From: Scyliorhinus canicula
Lineage: Eukaryota
Assembly: GCF_902713615.1 (NCBI RefSeq)
Contig: NC_052154.1
Coordinates: 74,209,495 to 74,273,494, forward strand
DNA length: 64,000 nucleotides
Direction: 5' to 3'
The notes under the pieces are model-generated. The model did not search any database and was not told the DNA's origin. It saw nothing but the letters and a program-made list of their open reading frames with translations. The position numbers and the translations under genes are program-made. Positions 14,924-39,283 of this stretch are shown one piece after another (the first letter of the stretch is position 1; every line of letters starts with the position of its first letter).

Positions 14924-15423
14924 NNNNNNNNNNNNNNNNNNNNNNNNNNNNNNNNNNNNNNNNNNNNNNNNNNNNNNNNNNNNNNNNNNNNNNNNNNNNN
15001 NNNNNNNNNNNNNNNNNNNNNNNNNNNNNNNNNNNNNNNNNNNNNNNNNNNNNNNNNNNNNNNNNNNNNNNNNNNNNNNNNNNNNNNNNNNNNNNNNNNN
15101 NNNNNNNNNNNNNNNNNNNNNNNNNNNNNNNNNNNNNNNNNNNNNNNNNNNNNNNNNNNNNNNNNNNNNNNNNNNNNNNNNNNNNNNNNNNNNNNNNNNN
15201 NNNNNNNNNNNNNNNNNNNNNNNNNNNNNNNNNNNNNNNNNNNNNNNNNNNNNNNNNNNNNNNNNNNNNNNNNNNNNNNNNNNNNNNNNNNNNNNNNNNN
15301 NNNNNNNNNNNNNNNNNNNNNNNNNNNNNNNNNNNNNNNNNNNNNNNNNNNNNNNNNNNNNNNNNNNNNNNNNNNNNNNNNNNNNNNNNNNNNNNNNNNN
15401 NNNNNNNNNNNNNNNNNNNNNNN
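14924..15423. other. Assembly gap (500 N)
   Basis: Run of N; L1 on the left does not continue on the right. Confidence 1.
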
Positions 15424-27196: not shown

Positions 27197-27372
27197 TGAA
27201 ATGAAATGAAAATCGCTTATCGTCACAAGCAGGCTTCAAATGAAGTTACTGTGAAAAACCCCTAGTGGTCACATTCCGGCGCCTGTTTGGGGAGGCTGGT
27301 ACGGGAATTGAACTGCGGACCTGCCTTGGTCTGCTTTAAAAGCCAGCGATTTAGCCCTGTGCTAAAGCCAGC
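27197..27372 (-). mobile_element. Short tRNA-headed SINE just upstream of the predicted start codon
   Basis: TGAAA-repeat tail and antisense head; same family as 5036-5208. Confidence 0.7.
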
Positions 27373-27379
27373 TCTCAAC

Positions 27380-27434
27380 ATGGGAAAGTGGATTAGCCTC
27401 CACTCTGTGATCACCCTCACAGTCCTCTCTACAG
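27380..27434 (+). CDS. IgSF receptor exon 1: signal peptide MGKWISLHSVITLTVLST
   Basis: ATG in AACATGG context, hydrophobic core, phase-1 donor AG|GTGGGT that joins the V exon in frame. Confidence 0.65.
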
Positions 27435-27721
27435 GTGGGTCCCCACAAACCAACCCTCAATATCTTCAAGAGTTTCAATTCAATTTCTTCTCTGTAAGAA
27501 TTATTTTCCTGACTATTTCATTATGTCTCAATGATGCTCCGATGATTCGGGATGGAAGAGGTTTCAGAAAGTCCTGAGCTTGTGCAAGACGCTGTATAAA
27601 ACTCAAACTATTATCAATCCTGTGGAATGTTAACTCGTTAACTCTGTCCCACCCAATCTCCAGATTCGGAGTGTTTTCACCATTTTTGTTCTTTCGTTTC
27701 TGACATGTTGTTCTTCCACAG

Positions 27722-28039
27722 TTGCCGGGAATCCCATATTGCGGGTGCGTCAGTACCCGGACAAGCTGAACCAGACCAGAGGCACCAATGTGACTTTCTT
27801 CTGCACATTCCCGTTTGCCCAGGACATCTCCAGAGTCCGGGTCAACTGGTGGAAGGAGGGTGAACGGAGCTTCCTCCGGGAGAGAAGCGACAGCAGATAT
27901 CAGTTTGAAATCCGGAATAAAGCCAGCGCCTCCTTCCTGCTACTTGATGTGGATGTGCCGGATTCCGGTGTGTATTACTGTCGAGTTAACAAGGCGGACA
28001 AAGTGGGGAACGGCACCGGCACAAGGCTGCTGGTAACCG
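27722..28039 (+). CDS. IgSF receptor exon 2: VJ-type V domain
   Basis: Polypyrimidine-CAG acceptor and G|GTGAGT donor, phase 1-1. Motifs FFC..VNWW..DSGVYYC..GNGTGTRLLVT. Confidence 0.92.
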
Positions 28040-30411
28040 GTGAGTGACTGACAGCTGGAAATCTGCCTGGGAAATGTCACTGTAGCTCATCCTGTTACTG
28101 GGCAGCCAGTACCAGTCCTTAAGGACATTACAGATTAGTCAGATTAGTGTCAGCTCAATGATTCCAAACATTGACACTGAAATCATTGACCTGGGGCGGA
28201 ATTGCTCTGCCTGATGTGTGTTGGAGGCAACTTCAATTGAGGCATTCAACTTGGCATCGGCTGATTATTTGAATCGAAACAATGCTTATCTGCAATGATG
28301 CTGGGTTTGATTGAAATGTTTGTCTGGGGACTGAGAACCCCCGAAGCTGTGGGATTTGTTTCCCTATGGGCAGTCAGGTGGAGGGGGTCTGTCTGAAGAA
28401 ATCCTCAGCCCCTCACCAGTAATTTCCAATTTTAAAAAGCACTTTCCCCAGAGCCCCCCGCTTGAGTGTGTCTGAGGGGGAATCTTCCTGCCTAACGGGT
28501 TCAATCTCCAGTCCCCCGCTTCAACCCGACCCCCCTGTCGCTCAGAAATTCACCCAGTGTGAAATCTTGTTCAGTTATGAAAGACTTTTTCCCTGAACAA
28601 TTCCTGGATTCCTACTGGATATTGGACAGGCGTTGTGTCTGATTGGACCAGTCAAGTTTCTGACTTCGCCTGTCGACCTCGCTCCCCAGAAACGTAACGT
28701 GGACAAAAATAAACCATTAAAACAGCCAACCCAGTAAAATAGGAGTGTATAAATCTGAGAGTTTCCGTGTTTTTAAACATTTTCGCCTGAAAACGACAAT
28801 GGGAGCCCGATTCAAAATCCTCTCGCTCGTTAGCGGATGAATGAACTCCTTTATTTTGTGGCATAACTTGGCAACAATTGAAGGTCTGAAGAAGTGAATC
28901 TGGTTCTGAGGTTTCACGGACTCTGGGTTCCTTTCGAATCAATTCCTCCCCGGTCATTTTGCGTTGAATTCTTCCCTTGTTTTCTGTTCCAGCGCCTGTC
29001 GCTCCCTTTGCATCTGTCCAAAAGTGCAATTGTGAGCTGGATTTCACATGGCTTCATCACCGGGACCGTTGACAGAATATTAAATAAAACCATTGGGGAA
29101 CGAAACTGTGTCAGCCACTACAGGGAGTGGGGGGGGGGGGGGGGGGGGTGCATCGGGGTCCTGCTGAATAGAAAGATCCCATTCCAGGGGTTACTCTCAT
29201 TCCCAGCTGCTGAGGTTGAGATTGAGTTTCGGGTGATGTGGAAATCTCTCAGACAAGACGCGGCATTTTCAGATATTTCAGCAGTGAGACTCTGGATTTT
29301 TCTTGGACGTTTTCTACATCTCTGGGCCGGCTAACCCAGCACCAACTTACGCCCAGAGACACTATTGCCCGTCTCTCCTGGGACCTCTGGCCTCACTCTC
29401 TAAATCCACCCTCTCTCAGCCGGCCTCTGTATCTCAGTGGAGGTATGAAGGGTGCAGACACTCTCTGCACATTAATGAGCTGGACAAAGGAGCCGCTGCC
29501 TTGTGTCTGAGCCCTCACATCAAGGACAGAGAGATGGTAGGGTGCTGGTCCTGAAATTCTCCCGCACTTTGTCGCTGTGCGATTTCAGCCGCTGCCAATG
29601 TAGCGAACAGAGGGGTGACTCTGAGCATCTTGCAAAGAAGTCAGTTAGGGCTTGCAGTCAACGGCAGAGCATTAATAGATTTATTACTAAAATAGGGAAG
29701 AGGTCGGTGCAATTTTAACGCTGCAATGACTGATACCAACCTATTTGTAAAATGTATTCAGTTTATCCATTTTATCCCATGTGACAGGCGCATTTGACCG
29801 TTCAGGACCCTGAAATCATCTGGCCTCACAATTAGACACATTCGGCTGTTTTGGGAATATTTTCGGTCATTCTCTTTTTTTATAAGATAATTTTTATTCA
29901 AATTTTCACAAAAGATCAATAATTTTCGGTCATTCCCGCCACCTGCAGGGAGAAATGTCTCCATGTCCTCCACCGCGCACTGGCCAAAGAGTAGATTGTG
30001 TACAGGAGAGGGGGGCGGGGGGGGGGGGGCTAGAGAGAGATTTTTGAAGGAGAGGCTGTGTTAGCTGCTGACAGGTTGTAGGTGTCGGAGAGAGAATTCC
30101 AGCCCAGGGAATGGGCTGCCGGACAAAGCAGCGGTGAGAATGGCCGGCTGGGCATGAACAAAATGGGATGGGGGGGGGGGGGGGAGTCAAAGGACTGATT
30201 TGAAGATAAGGATGAGGATTTTAAAATCGATTGGTTGGAGTGAGGGGGAGAGGGTGTTCAGGGGAGCTGGACGCGGCCTGGGTGGGCAGGGGAACGGCCT
30301 CTGCATCGCTTCATTGGGGAACTTTATTCCTCGAGGTGGTCGCCGTTAAAGAGCCTTTGGCAGAAGAGAGGCAAGAGGAGGGGGCAGAGTTTGAGTTGTA
30401 ATAGAAACGGA

Positions 30412-30542
30412 AAATACTGGACAATTGTAGCAGATCTGACAACATCTGTGGAGACGTTTCGACAAAGAGTCATCCAGACTGGAAACGTTAGCTCTTCTCT
30501 CTCCACAGATGTTGTCAGACCTGCTACAAGTGTCCAGTATTT
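30412..30542. repeat. Penelope-derived hairpin, 43-bp arms with 2 mismatches
   Basis: 30412-30454 is the reverse complement of 30500-30542; spacer holds a decayed hammerhead-like GAGTC..GACT-GAAACGTT. Confidence 0.7.
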
Positions 30543-32154
30543 GCTGTTTTTGTTTCAGATTCCAGCATCCGCCGTCATTTGCTTTTATATTTGAGCTGTG
30601 ACCGTCCTCATGGGATGTTGGATAAAATGCTGAGCTTCCATTGAACAGTAAACCAATGTTCACATGTCCAAGCTCCTTGATGCTGGAAAGGGGGTCATGG
30701 ATCATGACGATTTTTTTTCAGCTTTATCGATCGTTAGCCCGGAGGCAGTTATGTCACATATTTAAAGATGTGAAAGACAGCGGGAGAGGTGCCGGCACCT
30801 CTGGGACCCAGCTGGAGTTAGGAGAGAGAGAGCAGCCTCTCTTTCGAGATTGAACCTTCAGCTAATATTCCAAAAGAAGTGGATAAAAATGAAGATAAAG
30901 ATGGCAATTGTCCAACACAGGGATATACAGAAGTGACCGGGCAGCCAAGAGTAGCGGCAGCTGACAATATAAACACAACTAGCTCTGAGATATTGTGAGG
31001 ACAATGTCATGGACAACCACATTGGGGGACACTGGCTGGGGCTGGTGATGTTAACACTGTTGGAGACAATGGGAGGTTGTTGGAGAGCCAGCCCTGATCT
31101 GTTACAAACAACGTTATACATTACTTTCTCCCCGTGTCTGCGTAGGTCTCACCCCCCACAGCCCAAAAAGATGTGCAGGGTAGGTGAATTGGCAACGCTA
31201 AATTGGAAAAAAAGAATGGGGTACTCTAAATTTTAAAAACAAGTTATTCATGACCTGGACCAGGATGTTTGTACTGTAGTAACCTGCACACAGAGACTCA
31301 GAGTGGATGTTAAACTATCTCAGGTCAGAATGGAAATGTTTATGTTCGTTGCAGAGCGTGATCGGGTCACGAAAGACAGAAACAAAACTCGCCTTGTCTT
31401 TAGGATGTGGAAAACCTGCCGAAATAATGAAGGGGAAACGCTTCAGATAATGGAACCGGGAGCCCACAGTGTGATTTGGAGATAGGCTCGCTGCTCTAAG
31501 TCCTCTGTCAGAATGGGGATCCTCGTTAACCGGGGCTACATCCACCCCCCCCCCCCCCCCAACCCCGGATTCTTCTCCGCCTCGACAAATTGTAACCGAG
31601 TAAAACAGGAAGCGAATGACAACAATCGAGTTGGGGATCATTAGTTCGACCCGCTGCATAGGCGCACATTTCAAAGCGAACCGTATAACGTGTACCCACA
31701 AACAGGAAAAACTAGTGTTCAATATTAACTCAACATGGACTTTTATCAGACAGACACAGCCTGAGAGCAGTGTAAACAAACACAAACACAATATATATTC
31801 AACATAAAGAAACCTTCTCCTGTGGTTATTACCCCAATGGGCGGTGTGTGCTTAACCCTATCAGTCCCCCACCCCCCTCTCCCAGAGGTTTCTCTAGAAA
31901 CAGCCACACTAACATCCCGGGTATGAGCTCCTGGATTATTGAGAGTTAGACATCATTCTTGTCCCTTCACTTTGAGCAGTTTTGATGGATCGAGAGTTGT
32001 TGACTCAGGTTCAAAAACAACGGAACGAGTTTATTCAGGGGGAAAAGGGGAGGATTATGGCTGGGGACAGAATCAGAGTTTTCTCCATATCCATTGGAAC
32101 CCTAACCTTCTGGACCTGCAAAGACTTAATTACCTGCAAAGACTTGCATTCAAA

Positions 32155-32499
32155 GGGGCAGCACGGTAGCATGGTGGTTAGCATAAATGCTTCACAGCTC
32201 CAGGGTCCCAGGTTCGATTCCCAGCTGGGTCACTGTCTGTGCGGAGTCTGCACATTCTCCCCGTGTGTGCGTGGGTTTCCTCCGGGTGCTCCGGTTTCCT
32301 CCCACAGTCCAAAGATGTGCGGATTAGGTGGATTGGCCATGCTAAATTGCCCGTAGTGTCCTAATAGTAAGGTTAAGGGGGGGGAGTTGTTAGGTTGCGG
32401 GTATAGGGTGGATATGTGGGTTTGAGTAGGGTGATCATTGCTCGGCACAACATTGAGGGCCGAAGGGCCTGTTCTGTGCTGTACTGTTCTATGTTCTAT
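32155..32499 (+). mobile_element. Full-length V-SINE with CR1-type tail
   Basis: GGGGCAGCACGGTAGC head through TGTTCTATGTTCTA tail; near-identical to 40173-40515. Confidence 0.85.
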
Positions 32500-32539
32500 C
32501 ATTTTGCATCATTGACTTTGTCTACATGTGTGTTTGTGT

Positions 32540-32686
32540 AAACCACTTCTTCACGCACTTGATGAAGGAGATACCCTCCGAAAGCTAGTGATTCCAACTA
32601 AACCTGTTGGTCTTCAACCTGGTGTTGTAAGACTTCTTACTGTGCCCACCCCAGTCCAACACCGGCATCTCCACATCATGGCTTCC
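32540..32686 (+). mobile_element. Penelope pLTR 3' fragment
   Basis: GAAAGCTAGTG..CCTGGTGTTGTAAGACTTCTTACTGTGC..CATCTCCACATCA matches the pLTR of 52232-56154. Confidence 0.75.
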
Positions 32687-34488
32687 CAAAGGGACATGCG
32701 GACAACAGGAGGCCACTCAGCCCCTTGGAGTCTGTTCTGCTAGCCCATGCGATCATTGTTCATCATTGACCTAATTCTACACACCCGCCTTTGGCTAAGA
32801 AAGGTTTTAGCAATCTCAGATTTAACATGTACAATTGGTGTAATATCAATTATTAGCAGTGGAAGAGAGTTCCAAATTTCTATTACCCTCTGTGGGTGAA
32901 ATGTTCTAACTTTGGTCCTTAAATATCTGCCTCTAATTTTTAAACCTTACTCCGAGTCCTAAACTCCCCAAGCAGCAGAAACAGTTTCTAGATATCGCCC
33001 ATATCTTTCATCTTAATACTTTGAACCTGCCCTTTAACCTTCTGAACATGAGGGAATACAATCCCAGTTTTTATGATTTAACCATTAAAGTGCTGATCTC
33101 ATCTGGTAAATCTACGCTGCATTCACTTCAAGGCCAATAGATCCGTCCTAAAGTTTGTTCAAAATTACTGATACCGACTCCAGATGTGGTCTTTATAGGA
33201 GTGAAGCAGGACTTCTGTCCCTCTTTGTGCCCTGGTCCTCCAGATTATAAAGGCCAACATTTAATTTGCCTTTTTAACCCAGTTCTGTACCAGGTCACGA
33301 CATTTCAATCATCAACTTTCACTCCACCACGAGTCTGTTCTGGACCGCCACTGGCTCCAGCTTTTCACCATTTGTTTAAGGAGATGGCCTCATTTGCCGC
33401 TATTGGAGTATATTTGATACAGTTTTTCCCATTCTCTTTGAATGATGAAGACATATTGATCGACTGTGTTCCCAGTCACATTGCCGCTCATCCGAGTACC
33501 TTCGGAAAATGTGGATCGGTGGCTCTCTGTCATATTATTAAACCGTTAATACATCAATAGGTGACTAGTTGAGGCCCCGACACACGTCCTTGTAAATCTT
33601 GTCATTTGGAGAATCTGCTCATTATCCCAATCTCAGCCTCTCGTGCCTCGCACGCCTTCAATAAGCAACGCGGGTTCAATTCCCGTACCGGCCTCCCCGG
33701 ACAGGCGCCGGAATGTGGCGACTAGGGGCCTTTCACAGTAACTTCATTTGAAGCCTACTTGTGACAATAAGCGATTATTATTATTATATTATTAATTCGC
33801 TTTCAATTCCATGGATTTAACCCTGGACAAGAGCTGGACATTCCCACACAAAAATCTCGCTGGATATTGCTCCGATTGAGCTATTGTCCCTGTTGGTTTG
33901 TCTGGACACTCGGGTGTGTGACGGATGAGAGTGAATTAACCCGAGTCATTCTCAGTGGATCTGCAGTTATTCAGAATAGAAATGGGTGCAATTTAACCCC
34001 CCCCCCCCCCCCCCAGCAGTGCCTTTGGGAAGAGCTTAGCGGGCGGGAGGTGGAAGATATTGGATACAATTCGGGCATTGACACAAATACCGACAACTGT
34101 GTGGGAGACTGGAAGCTGCCCAGGGATTGCTGTTAGTCTGGTTGGGATTGGGAATGAGCAGAAGCGGGAAACTCCCCCTTGTCCCAGTTTCTAATTCCAG
34201 AGCCATCCTCCTGTGCTAACCTGGGCGGAAACCTGGGAGGCATCGGCCTCCTTCACAAGGAAACACAATTATTACCAAGGTGACTAGAATAAGGGGGGGA
34301 TAGTTAAGGGTCACGGTGTGAATAAGAGCGAGAAATGGTTAAATACGAAGAAAGATACGTTGCATGGACATTGCAAAGTAAAATCAAACCAAGAGAATAA
34401 TTCAAACCGGGTGTGAAACAAATCTGATTCATTTCTACTCGAAACGACATGAGAATAATGTGATCTTTCTGTGCTCTGTCTCCCAAAG

Positions 34489-34794
34489 CTGCCCCCTATT
34501 CTCCCCACATTGTCCCCACTCTCTTTGGGAAAGGCTCGGCGCTTTTCCTCACACTGGCCTGCAACGCCGGCAGCTTTCACTCCCAGCCACTGAGCATCCG
34601 CTGGGCTGTGAACGGCACCGACTTTAGAAAGGGGACCCGCACAGATATACAGCCAGGACCGGGAAAACTCTTCCAGCATTCCAGCTATTTGGAGGAACCG
34701 CAGCCTGTGCAGAATGGGACAGTTTATACCTGCCGAGTGTCCTACCCGAACAATCCGATGCAAACCCATTACACCTACATTGCCAGTGCTGGAG
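34489..34794 (+). CDS. IgSF receptor exon 3: C1-set Ig domain
   Basis: AAAG| acceptor and G|GTAAGG donor, phase 1-1. LACNAGSFHSQPLSIRWAVNG...FQHSSYL...YTCRVSY with Trp at Cys+14 and 57-aa Cys spacing. Confidence 0.85.
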
Positions 34795-36244
34795 GTAAGG
34801 TCACTTCAACAGATTCGCAAACCTTTCACAACATTTTGTCAATTAACCCTAATGTGAACATATATATAACATTGTACAGTATTTACATCGTGATAGATAT
34901 CCCGGGATACACTGGGGGGGGGGGGGGGGGGGGGGATATCCCGCTGTTTTGTCACATTCATTCTGAAGATTGAAATAAAGCGAGATTTCCCATTGAAATC
35001 TGAGATGATTTTGGGTCACCCTGATTTGAGGAACACTGGCATTAAAGTTTACCTCGTGTCCAGCCACACCCCTGGAAGGTATCGCCCTCCACGTGGGATG
35101 TCCTGGCTGGAAGTGTGGGGCGAATATGAAGTTTCTAAAGGTAATTGGATCGAAACCTGAAAAGGAAAAAAAAAAATCCCGGATATGCATGGAAAGAAGA
35201 GGGGAATGGGATTAACTGGATCACTCTTTCATCGGCAAGAGGGGCCGAATGGCCTCCCCCTGTGCTCTCTATTTGCATCATGTCCCCTATCAGCGGGATT
35301 TCCCTCCCAGCAGAAACAGTTAATGGAAAATTAGCTGACATAGTCTCTATCAGCTTTAGAGTCGCCAGCAACAACCATTCCCCACTTTGGGCACGAGCTG
35401 GATGGGAGCATTGAAATAAGATTGACGGTCAGATTTCCCAGAGACCGTCTCCCCCGCTCACACACCCAGCGCTAAATGGCAGAGGGGAAATACAATAGAA
35501 ACTGTGTATTTTATATTAACACAAAGGATCCCTAACCGAACAGGCAACTTTATTCAAAGTCACTTGGATGGCATTGACCTTGATTTTAACAGCATTTAGA
35601 TTTAGCAGAAAGTCTTTATAGCACACGTATGTATTGGAGAGTGAAGACCCAAAAATCTATAGGTTTTGCTGCAACAACCTGATCTGGAATTGAAAAGGTC
35701 ATGCACATTAATGTGATGCATGTTAGTGCCTAGGATGCTTGGAAACAAATAACTATCTTAACAAAAGCCTTCTCACAAACTTGGAACCTCTTTAAAGTAG
35801 CAATATCCCTATGTTAAAAAAAAACTCCTGTCCCTGTAGTTGAGAAATGGAAGTAGAAACTGTTTGATTTTAAATGGAGTTGACTCATTTTAGCAGGGGC
35901 TGAGCACAGCTCAGAGAAGAGTGAGCTTTTACAATGAATGGAGGCACAGTTAGAACAAGAGAGGGGTGAGAAGGTAAATTAAAACATTTCTCCTCTACCT
36001 AATACCCCATTGCCACCCTGACAATTTTAACAATACATGTATATTTCTAACCAGTATTATTTGTAACCACTATGCTTACTTGCAGGATGTGGTAATAGTC
36101 AGATTAAATCATACTGTTAATCTGTATATCGGTGCTTGAATTAAGTGTTAAAACCTGCATATGTTGTATTGTGCACATATTTCCTGTGGTGTCATATAAC
36201 TATTACATTGAGTTATGCATAGTCTGCATTTTGAAATTTTGCAG

Positions 36245-36355
36245 AGCAAAACTCAGGTGTACCCTGGTGGATCTATATCTGTATTGGGAGTGGGGCTTTC
36301 CTCTTGCTGCTCCTGATTATTACATCAATCCTTTGTAAATTCTGTGTGTGCAGAG
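36245..36355 (+). CDS. IgSF receptor exon 4: transmembrane segment
   Basis: TTTTGCAG| acceptor and G|GTAAGC donor, phase 1-1. EQNSGVPWWIYICIGSGAFLLLLLIITSILCKFCVCR. Confidence 0.85.
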
Positions 36356-37253
36356 GTAAGCATTGTGGACTTTGCTAAATGCTTTAAATCTAGAATTTTC
36401 AATGTATTTGATTTGTAAGACGTTGCAGTGGGCTGAAGTAATATTGTAAGGGAATTACATTTATTTGAAGTAACTGTACTCATAGATTTAAACAATAAGT
36501 TCAGTGAACACTCAGAACGGTTTTGTAACTATGATTGTTTTCACTGTTGAATATTATAACATTTATTGTGCATCACTGGACAACCTCCTCAATTACTAGT
36601 TTGACATGTGAATGAAACAAACCTTGCAGAATCTCGGTGAATGCAAGAGAGGCAAACAAATGAATCACTGCCATAGATATTTGCACTGTGTATTGCATCA
36701 AGTATCCTAACATGACAGCTTACACAGTGCAGTCCTGAAGCCTAGCTCTGCCCCATTTCTGGTAGATGTAACAGAAAAAAGTGATATGTATAATTACTGT
36801 AAGCAGAGTTTGCACATTCTCCCCGTGTCTGCGTGGGTTTCGCCCCCACAACCCAAAAATGTGCAGAGTAGGTGGATTGGCCACACTAAATTGCCCCTTA
36901 ATTGGAAAAAATAATTGGGTAATTAAATTTACTTTTTGAAAAATAATTACTGCAAGCGAAGTATGTTATGCTACCCTGAAGTCATATCATTTCCTTGAAT
37001 GTCTGCAGATAAAATTGTGGTAACTCGCCTTTATCCCAAGTGGTTACATAAATTAGATTTTCTCAAGGACTTTTTAAACAATAAATTCTTCACCTATCAA
37101 TAGCAAAGGTTGTAAAGTAACCTCATTATCCATCCAACTTTTGTGGGTTACATCAGGTTAAAGGTTTATCAGTCCCAATACGTCTGATGGCCATCGACCA
37201 TATTCATTCATAACCTAGATAAGGATACTATGCAAGTATTGGATCACTCACCA

Positions 37254-37900
37254 ATCCTCATGATCTAATTATTGGGATGACTTTGGCATATCCTCATGAT
37301 CTAGTTATTCGCATCACTCCGACATATCCTCATGATTTAGTCATTGGGATCACTTCACATACCCTCATGATCTAGTTATTGGGATCACTCCCATATACTC
37401 TCATAATCTAGTTAATGGGATTGCTCCCACAAACTCTCAAGATCTAGCTATTGGGATCACTCCAACATATCCTCATGGTCTAGTTATTGGGATCCATCCC
37501 ATATACCCTCGTGATTTAGTTGTTGGGATCACTCCGACATATCCTCATGATCTAGTTATTGGGATCCATCTCAGATACCCTCATGATTTAGCTATTGTGG
37601 AGGGTAGCATGGTGGCACAGTGGTTAGCACTGCTATCTCACAGCACTGAGATCGCAGGTTCAATCATGGCTCTGGGTCACTGACCATGTGGGGTTTGCAC
37701 ATTCTCCCTATTCTTGCGTGAGTTTCACCTCCACAACCCAAAGATGTGCAGGGTAGGTGGATTGGCCACACTAAATTTCCCCTTAATTGGAAAAAATAAA
37801 TTGGGTACTCTAAATATATATTTTTTAAATTATTTAGTTATTGGGATCACTCTGACATATCCTTGTGATCTAGTTATTGGCATCATTCTTGCATTTTTCA
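37254..37900. repeat. About 36-bp intronic minisatellite TCCTCATGATCTAGTTATTGGGATCACTCC.ACATA, interrupted by a SINE
   Basis: About 12 diverged units visible on both sides of the SINE at 37602-37830. Confidence 0.85.
37602..37830 (+). mobile_element. V-SINE (short form)
   Basis: Head and core motifs. Confidence 0.75.
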
Positions 37901-38320
37901 TGATCTTGGATAAGAGACCAGCTAGTTACTAATTTGATCAATCGAGGAAAGTTAGTAATGAACTAAATCTAATTAGATTAATTCACAGTGAGGCCATTTG
38001 TTTTGAGCAATAGCTGGGACTGAGTATAGTCATTAATACTGAGACTCATTTGATTGCCAACTGAAGTTAATTAGGTTGTTCTGAATTAATCTGTAGATTT
38101 TGTTTCCAAGTGAACTGATGAGAAATGAATCAAAGATTATAGTAATAATTAGTAGACATGTGGTTTGAAAAGTAAGAGTTCTATTAGATTGTGAAATTGA
38201 GATGTTTCTATGAAGCAATGCAGTTCAAAGGCAATTTGCTGATTTGCCTGTTCATACCTGCCGGAGAATTTGTTTCAAGTTTAACATCATATTATTTTCT
38301 TTCCATTTATTCTCTGCTAG

Positions 38321-38364
38321 GCAAAAGGAGAAAAACAGAGAAAAGATGTGTTCAGGAAAAGCAG
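38321..38364 (+). CDS. IgSF receptor exon 5: basic juxtamembrane cytoplasmic exon GKRRKTEKRCVQEKQ
   Basis: Long polypyrimidine tract with TAG acceptor, CAG|GTAACT donor, phase 1 to 0. Confidence 0.65.
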
Positions 38365-39073
38365 GTAACTGTCTATAAGATTTTTAAAATGAGTCTTCTG
38401 AAATCTCTTAATGCATATTGTGCGGGAAAAAATATCCTAAACATAGACATCCAAATAGACAATTGAGATTGTTTTTCACTGTATTTTACAATGGACATTC
38501 TGTCTTGGGCATGGTTAGAATGTAATACATAGAAACGGTTATGTTCCCTTTGTTACCTTGTAGGATTGTTGAATGACATTTATTTGTATGTAATATGTAT
38601 ATACGTATATTTAATCATTCTCCTGGAAGTACTATCTCATGCTGGAGCATAGTTTTATAGATTGAGTTTCCTGTGGTATCTTGTTGAAGTAACATTACAT
38701 GTATGTACCTTAACAGTAAGATCCTAATTTGAACTAGGAAGCTGGTGGAAATGTTGTACACAAACATTGAAGCAAGCAATGCACTCAGAAACAATGGTGT
38801 CTTTGAGAACCAGCCAATTTTAATGTGCGGGCCTCATTTCATCAAATATTGTCAGGGTCCTGCCTAAATACTGGATCTACTGATCTACTACCTGGTTGGT
38901 GCATGAAAATGGCAACCGAGTCCTCACAGGAAAGGTGACTGGCAGTCAGGTAAACAGTTAGTGCAGAGAAAACTTGGGGCAAGCGCAATCCATTTCCTTG
39001 TGGGGAACAGAGGGGATTTTCATACTGTGAAAGTCAACATCGTGTCAATCTCTTTTGTACTGTTGTCTTGCAG

Positions 39074-39283
39074 CATATGCATAAAGCAGCTAATCAAAAG
39101 ATGGCATATACAGCTGTGGATTTTAACAGACTCGCACAAAACACCAAGTACCAACAGATGGAGAAGAGAAAAGCATGTCCGCACCCACCCCAGAGAAACC
39201 AACAGAGAGACGACAAGGTTATTTATGCAACACCCCCACTCAAACAATACCAGGGCAGAAAGATGGGCCGTTCTGTGCAATGA
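39074..39283 (+). CDS. IgSF receptor exon 6: cytoplasmic tail with MAYTAV and VIYAT motifs, then stop
   Basis: TTGCAG| phase-0 acceptor, open frame to TGA, ATTAAA at 39412-39417. Confidence 0.72.
   Translation, partial: HMHKAANQKMAYTAVDFNRLAQNTKYQQMEKRKACPHPPQRNQQRDDKVIYATPPLKQYQGRKMGRSVQ

Follow-up and report, generated by a model that had tools for sequence, protein, structure and literature searches.

Within a 64,000-nt stretch of the Scyliorhinus canicula genome (hereafter the window; GCF_902713615.1, NC_052154.1, positions 74,209,495-74,273,494, forward strand; window coordinates are used throughout) lies LOC119970979, a six-exon gene that is intact and transcribed and encodes a type I membrane protein (Table 1). 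From its N terminus, this protein has a signal peptide and a germline-joined immunoglobulin (Ig) V domain that ends in a J-like G strand, then a single C1-set domain, an uncharged transmembrane (TM) helix and a tyrosine-bearing tail of 77 residues.

Table 1 Exons of LOC119970979, with the evidence for each (window coordinates).
Feature	Position	Strand	Evidence and remarks
Exon 1: start codon and most of the signal peptide (split leader)	27380..27434	+	55 nt, ends in phase 1; ATG at 27380, GT donor at 27435; RefSeq match
Exon 2: end of leader, V-set domain, built-in J-like G strand GNGTGTRLLVT	27722..28039	+	Pfam; RNA contig ends; GT donor at 28040
Exon 3: C1-set constant-type Ig domain	34489..34794	+	Pfam; PDB sequence matches; atlas neighbours are C1-set/SIRP clusters
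Exon 4: end of stalk, uncharged TM helix, Cys-rich juxtamembrane CKFCVC	36245..36355	+	Sole 111-nt AG..GT candidate; helix in the AlphaFold2 model
Exon 5: 44-nt basic cytoplasmic mini-exon (KRRKTEKRCVQEKQ)	38321..38364	+	AG/GT borders and phase; RefSeq match
Exon 6: cytoplasmic tail with KMAYTAVDF, PHPPQR (PxxPxR) and VIYATP, then stop codon	39074..39283	+	Script; motif conservation across orthologues

Rebuilding of the gene by script gave exons of 55+318+306+111+44+210 = 1044 nt, translating to 347 aa, with AG/GT flanks and fitting phases at all exons; a single open AG..GT candidate was available for the 306-nt exon, and likewise for the 111-nt exon. At every residue the product equals XP_038662017.1, a 347-aa RefSeq “uncharacterized protein” of S. 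canicula that was reached via the cluster of its S. torazame orthologue and is encoded on a 198,790,641-bp chromosome; the RefSeq coding sequence spans 11,904 nt, as does the rebuilt model. An earlier note on this DNA had proposed these six exons with GT-AG sites, matching phases and the same length, and both the script and the RefSeq identity bear it out; the motifs that it quoted (YYC...GNGTGTRLLVT, C-x13-W, FxxxSxL and YTCRV) are likewise all present. Given the identity of the two products, that model reproduced an existing one. The catshark gene was already modelled in RefSeq, without a name, and is a sound gene call rather than a new kind of gene; the novelty implied by the note is not supported, since the gene belongs to a big family of cartilaginous fishes to which automatic annotation gives SIRP-like names. 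Reading the locus as a pseudogene was rejected, since the frame is intact, 1:1 orthologues are present and RNA contigs lie over the gene. No further exon of the V-C1-TM kind was found in the 64-kb window, and the nearest 25 kb on both sides are empty of family exons.

Exon 2 matches the V-set profile of Pfam (E 2.2e-9), and a PDB sequence search placed T-cell receptor (TCR) alpha V domains, shark VNAR and CD79b nearest to it among solved structures. Eight of nine residues of its J-like stretch are identical to human TRAJ FGTGTRLLV; the aromatic residue of the J motif is replaced by Asn, creating an N-G-T glycosylation sequon, and the GxGTxLxV pattern is kept throughout the family alignment. 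The V reading continues through the J-like strand into the splice donor with no separate J segment, and no CACAGTG heptamer of a recombination signal sequence (RSS) occurs between 27006 and 31464. As the strand is built into the V exon and the heptamer is missing, the gene does not rearrange. VJ in a single exon without an adjoining RSS, which the earlier note had recognised, is thus confirmed, and the gene model and Pfam domains together support its description of a germline-joined, non-rearranging leader-VJ-C1-TM-tail gene.

The second domain had been assigned to the C1-set, and this assignment holds: exon 3 scores 36 bits (E 8.8e-9), above the Pfam cut-off of 21, and matches none of the C2-set, CD80-like C2-set and I-set profiles there. 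Sequence matches to exon 3 in PDB are IgG CH3, beta-2-microglobulin, UrIg2 and the membrane-proximal alpha3/beta2 domains of major histocompatibility complex (MHC) proteins. Only four cysteines are present in the ectodomain, all of them intradomain, with no free, stalk or interchain cysteine. The AlphaFold2 (AF2) model contains two confident Ig domains and a TM helix at residues 234-261, with a mean predicted local distance difference test (pLDDT) score of 72 and values >80 over most of both Ig domains.

Transcription was followed in contigs of four RNA runs. One contig begins to match at 27721/27722 and carries 79 more bases upstream, and two others (one from a sister species) stop matching exactly at 28039, with 184 and 81 more bases beyond; these continuations past the exon 2 borders are non-intron sequence. 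Splicing at both borders of exon 2 predicts exactly such ends and accounts for the contig breaks at 27722 and 28039. Exon 3 is present in the same RNA runs as exon 2, while exon 1 has no direct cover by contigs of the four runs. Where the earlier note looked to RNA for the splice junctions, the contig ends therefore support both borders of exon 2, direct splice evidence being confined to that exon. Just upstream of the gene and outside its coding part, a highly repeated element resembling a short interspersed nuclear element (SINE) occupies 27200-27366 and ends 14 bp 5′ of the start codon; summed RNA contig depths over it are 1e5 in every run, and many loose contig ends fall at 27313-27366. 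Given the 79 bases that the exon 2 contig carries upstream, the 5′ untranslated region would measure ~24 nt and begin inside the SINE-like repeat.

A phmmer search with the V exon against 1.84 billion cluster representatives returned 102 proteins at E 1e-10 or better, many of them 250-420 aa long and aligning over V, C1, TM and tail, with dozens full-length; in BLASTP, family members from chimaera, sharks and rays matched at E 1e-57 to 1e-30 over ~330 aa. All relatives that were given names belong to Chondrichthyes (sharks, rays and elephant shark). Full-length paralogues have 25-40% identity, the same domain order and the same conserved V, J and C1 motifs. By this sequence evidence, the catshark gene is a conserved member of a large chondrichthyan V-C1-TM multigene family, for which a literature search found no describing paper. 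NCBI auto-names within the family run from SIRP-alpha-like and SIRP-gamma-like through tapasin-related-like, NCR3LG1-like (B7-H6-like), CD276 homolog and PD-L1-like to Ig lambda-like and TCR beta-like, an inconsistency that fits a family without a clear counterpart among characterised genes.

In a maximum-likelihood tree of 40 family proteins, the catshark protein belongs to an orthogroup clade in which each of ten species is represented once (two Scyliorhinus, Carcharodon, Cetorhinus, Heterodontus, Rhincodon, Hemiscyllium, Chiloscyllium, Heptranchias and Leucoraja), with a long stem and a Shimodaira-Hasegawa-like approximate likelihood ratio (SH-aLRT) support of 100. Topology within the clade is largely species-like, with three basal branches unresolved. 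With one sequence per species in so well supported a clade, this is a single-copy gene kept at least since the shark-skate split; the orthologues share between 91% (S. torazame) and 48% (little skate) of residues with the catshark protein. Tails in the sister clade of the orthogroup lack any tyrosine. The catshark gene shares full-length homology and the V-J-C1-TM layout with the rest of the family, but differs in its long-branched single-copy orthogroup, its diverged tail and the absence of a family neighbour within 25 kb. Family genes of the elephant shark stand in tandem, 6-10 kb apart. A span of 25 kb on Callorhinchus milii MU249845.1 (15,598,786-15,624,247) holds three of these genes in mixed orientation, so that the chimaera has the family as a tight tandem cluster.

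Across the ten elasmobranch orthologues, the TM/juxtamembrane segment (WWIY...CKFCVC; residues 234-270) is the most conserved part of the protein, with a mean pairwise identity of 0.75 (V, 0.64; C1, 0.60; tail, 0.53). It includes an invariant G-S-G within the TM helix and the CKFCVC cysteine cluster at the inner membrane face. Within the V domain, conservation is highest in the D-E strand region (FEIRNK) and lowest in the CDR-like (complementarity-determining region) loops. The TM helix (IYICIGSGAFLLLLLIITSIL) carries no charged residue, making pairing with DAP12- or FcR-gamma-type adaptors unlikely. In S. torazame, isoform X2 (P0157, a RefSeq model) skips the 111-nt TM exon (equivalent to 36245-36355); the skip keeps the frame and would yield a protein without a membrane anchor, with the tail sequence retained.

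Tails were scanned for canonical immunoreceptor tyrosine-based inhibitory motifs (ITIM, [SIVL]xYxx[IVL]) and switch motifs (ITSM, TxYxx[VI]), which are found in 0/10 orthologues and in most paralogues, there as SIRP-type sequences (LTYAAL, VTYAAL, TEYAEI and similar). The orthogroup tail keeps an ITIM-like MxYxxV in KMAYTAVDF, with Met at position -2, and this looks like a diverged form of the KMTYAxLD of paralogues. Also kept are the PxxPxR motif (PHPPQR) and an invariant [I/V]YA[T/S]P, a YxxP motif in which Tyr330, Ala331 and Pro333 are the same in all ten sequences. The apparent inhibitory form that the earlier note saw in this tail finds no support in an MxYxxV and a YxxP; an inhibitory reading would fit the paralogues, not LOC119970979.

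Gene model, domains, transcription, placement in orthogroup and family, and motif content are matters of observation. Beyond them, LOC119970979, as the catshark copy of a single-copy elasmobranch orthogroup within the V-C1-TM family, probably encodes a ligand-binding receptor that signals through its own tail. The V domain would bind a conserved ligand. Because the TM helix is uncharged, the receptor would work without adaptors bearing immunoreceptor tyrosine-based activation motifs (ITAM). Once tail tyrosines are phosphorylated, MxYxxV and the invariant YA[T/S]P would serve as docking sites for SH2 proteins, and PxxPxR may do so for SH3 proteins. From its strong conservation, the TM/juxtamembrane segment may take part in an interaction inside the membrane or be palmitoylated.

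Several points weigh against this reading of the gene as a self-signalling receptor in a SIRP-like family. Junctions 2-3, 3-4, 4-5 and 5-6 are carried by the RefSeq and S. torazame models and by loose contig ends, not by read-spanning evidence, and the first tyrosine motif (KMAYTAVDF) is lost in little skate. In a search of PDB with a profile of the ten orthologues, Ig lambda light chains (E 1.6e-13) match at least as well as SIRP (SIRP alpha 2wng, E 2.5e-12; SIRP gamma 4i2x, E 2.9e-11), and with single-domain profiles multi-Ig chains fill the top ranks. Fold searches of the AF2 model do not separate SIRP, B7/butyrophilin, TCR and Ig light chains, since Ig lambda, Skint/BTNL, PD-L1, SIRP alpha, CD276 and TCR beta all score alike (~E 1e-14, TM-scores 0.25-0.35). 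Finally, the ligand, the sign of the signal and any partners are inferred.

The chondrichthyan family appears SIRP-like in its architecture (a non-rearranging V domain with a J-like strand, then a C1-set domain, a single TM helix and a tyrosine tail) and in its tail motifs, with orthology to SIRP unproven; the YAxL and TEYAxI motifs that contribute to this likeness are carried by paralogues, not by the orthogroup of LOC119970979. If the gene were a true (co-)orthologue of tetrapod SIRP alpha, it would encode an inhibitory receptor of myeloid cells, with CD47 as its ligand and SHP-1/2 recruited to it, and the SIRP-alpha-like or SIRP-gamma-like NCBI names of several orthologues, the profile matches to 2wng and 4i2x and the LTYAxL and TEYAxI sequences in paralogue tails point this way. 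SIRP is also the nearest named family by language-model features, its clusters taking 22 of the top 100 places among atlas neighbours. One catshark paralogue (P0108; 450 aa, TM helix at residue 346) is, judged by its length, long enough for a second C1 domain. However, the SIRP family has two membrane-proximal C1-set domains where the catshark gene has one, and the orthogroup has neither the canonical ITIMs of SIRP alpha, absent from all ten tails, nor the charged TM segment and short tail of SIRP beta; Ig lambda chains, moreover, score equally well. No bony-vertebrate SIRP came back when 5.8 billion proteins were searched twice by profile, within the limit that such a search reaches only proteins with short words in common; the matches were chondrichthyan members alone and, after them, MHC class II beta and one JAM-like protein. 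This limit makes the missing bony-vertebrate SIRPs weak negative evidence. Orthology to SIRP alpha is, on balance, unlikely.

A B7/butyrophilin-type V-C-TM molecule, whose main role would be to serve as ligand to a receptor of another cell rather than to signal itself, would explain why Skint, BTNL9, PD-L1 and CD276 are the top Swiss-Prot matches in Foldseek, why paralogues are auto-named NCR3LG1-like, CD276 homolog and PD-L1-like, and why tails of the sister clade carry no tyrosine. The TM-scores of these fold matches are only 0.25-0.35, however, and exon 3 matches the C1-set with no CD80-like C2-set. J-like GxGTxLxV strands are typical of the V domains of SIRP, TCR, Ig and NKp30, not of B7 V domains, and this strand is kept across the family; the tyrosine and PxxPxR motifs, in turn, are conserved across elasmobranchs. 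A role of the B7 type is accordingly improbable.

The V-J-C1 order, the best full-length profile matches and best Foldseek matches in PDB and a J stretch near TRAJ bring the protein close to Ig lambda and TCR chains, from which it differs in having no RSS, separate J, charged TM residues or interchain cysteine, and in having its own signalling tail. NCR3/NKp30 is a single VJ without a C domain, whereas the catshark gene has a C1-set exon. PRARP is cited in PMC10751288 only as a VJ gene found in the MHC. UrIg and UrIg2 are elasmobranch non-rearranging VJ-C1 genes with 3-11 C domains, encoding disulfide-linked homodimers and linked to MHC or the antigen-receptor complex (PMC12227049). With these the catshark gene shares a single-exon VJ, a split leader and C1-type domains, and the C1 profile of its family matches the UrIg2 structure 9dmx (115 bits summed over three stretches); it differs in its one C1 and in the lack of a free ectodomain cysteine. 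Designation of the gene as an antigen-receptor precursor kind, as in the earlier note, is apt for the architecture alone and is equally true of SIRP and the other known VJ-C1 proteins.

There is a small chance that the orthogroup is not SIRP but a distinct, ancient VJ-C1-TM chain whose conserved TM/juxtamembrane segment pairs with a partner chain; if so, it would represent a germline-encoded two-chain, TCR-like receptor and a living model of the pre-RAG antigen receptor. Least probable of all is a surviving UrIg/UrIg2-like relative of a pre-RAG antigen-receptor chain, nearer to Ig/TCR than to any innate receptor family: TCR alpha V domains are the best single-domain PDB matches of the V exon, its J stretch is 8/9 identical to TRAJ, the family C1 profile matches UrIg2 strongly and V-J-C1-TM is the predicted precursor architecture (PMC10751288, PMC12227049), but the TCR V matches are weak (E ~1e-5), polar residues replace the aromatic of the FGxG motif, stalk cysteine and charged TM residue are both absent, and UrIg proteins have several C domains rather than one (PMC12227049).

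Current models of Ig/TCR origin take non-rearranging VJ-C1 genes as their raw material (PMC10751288, PMC12227049). To the chondrichthyan family LOC119970979 adds a clean member that is conserved, is present as a single copy and has an altered signalling tail. It is of use in annotation correction and as a point of reference when domain trees of antigen-receptor relatives are built; alone, the gene does not change the overall picture.

Elsewhere in the window, a 500-N assembly gap (14924-15423) lies in a transposon-rich stretch (~6.8-24.5 kb) with many long overlapping open reading frames (ORFs). A peptide of repeat origin, CRVGGLATLNCP, is encoded by ORFs near the intronic stretch 36805-36842 and turns up again at 36781-36939 and 37714-37932.

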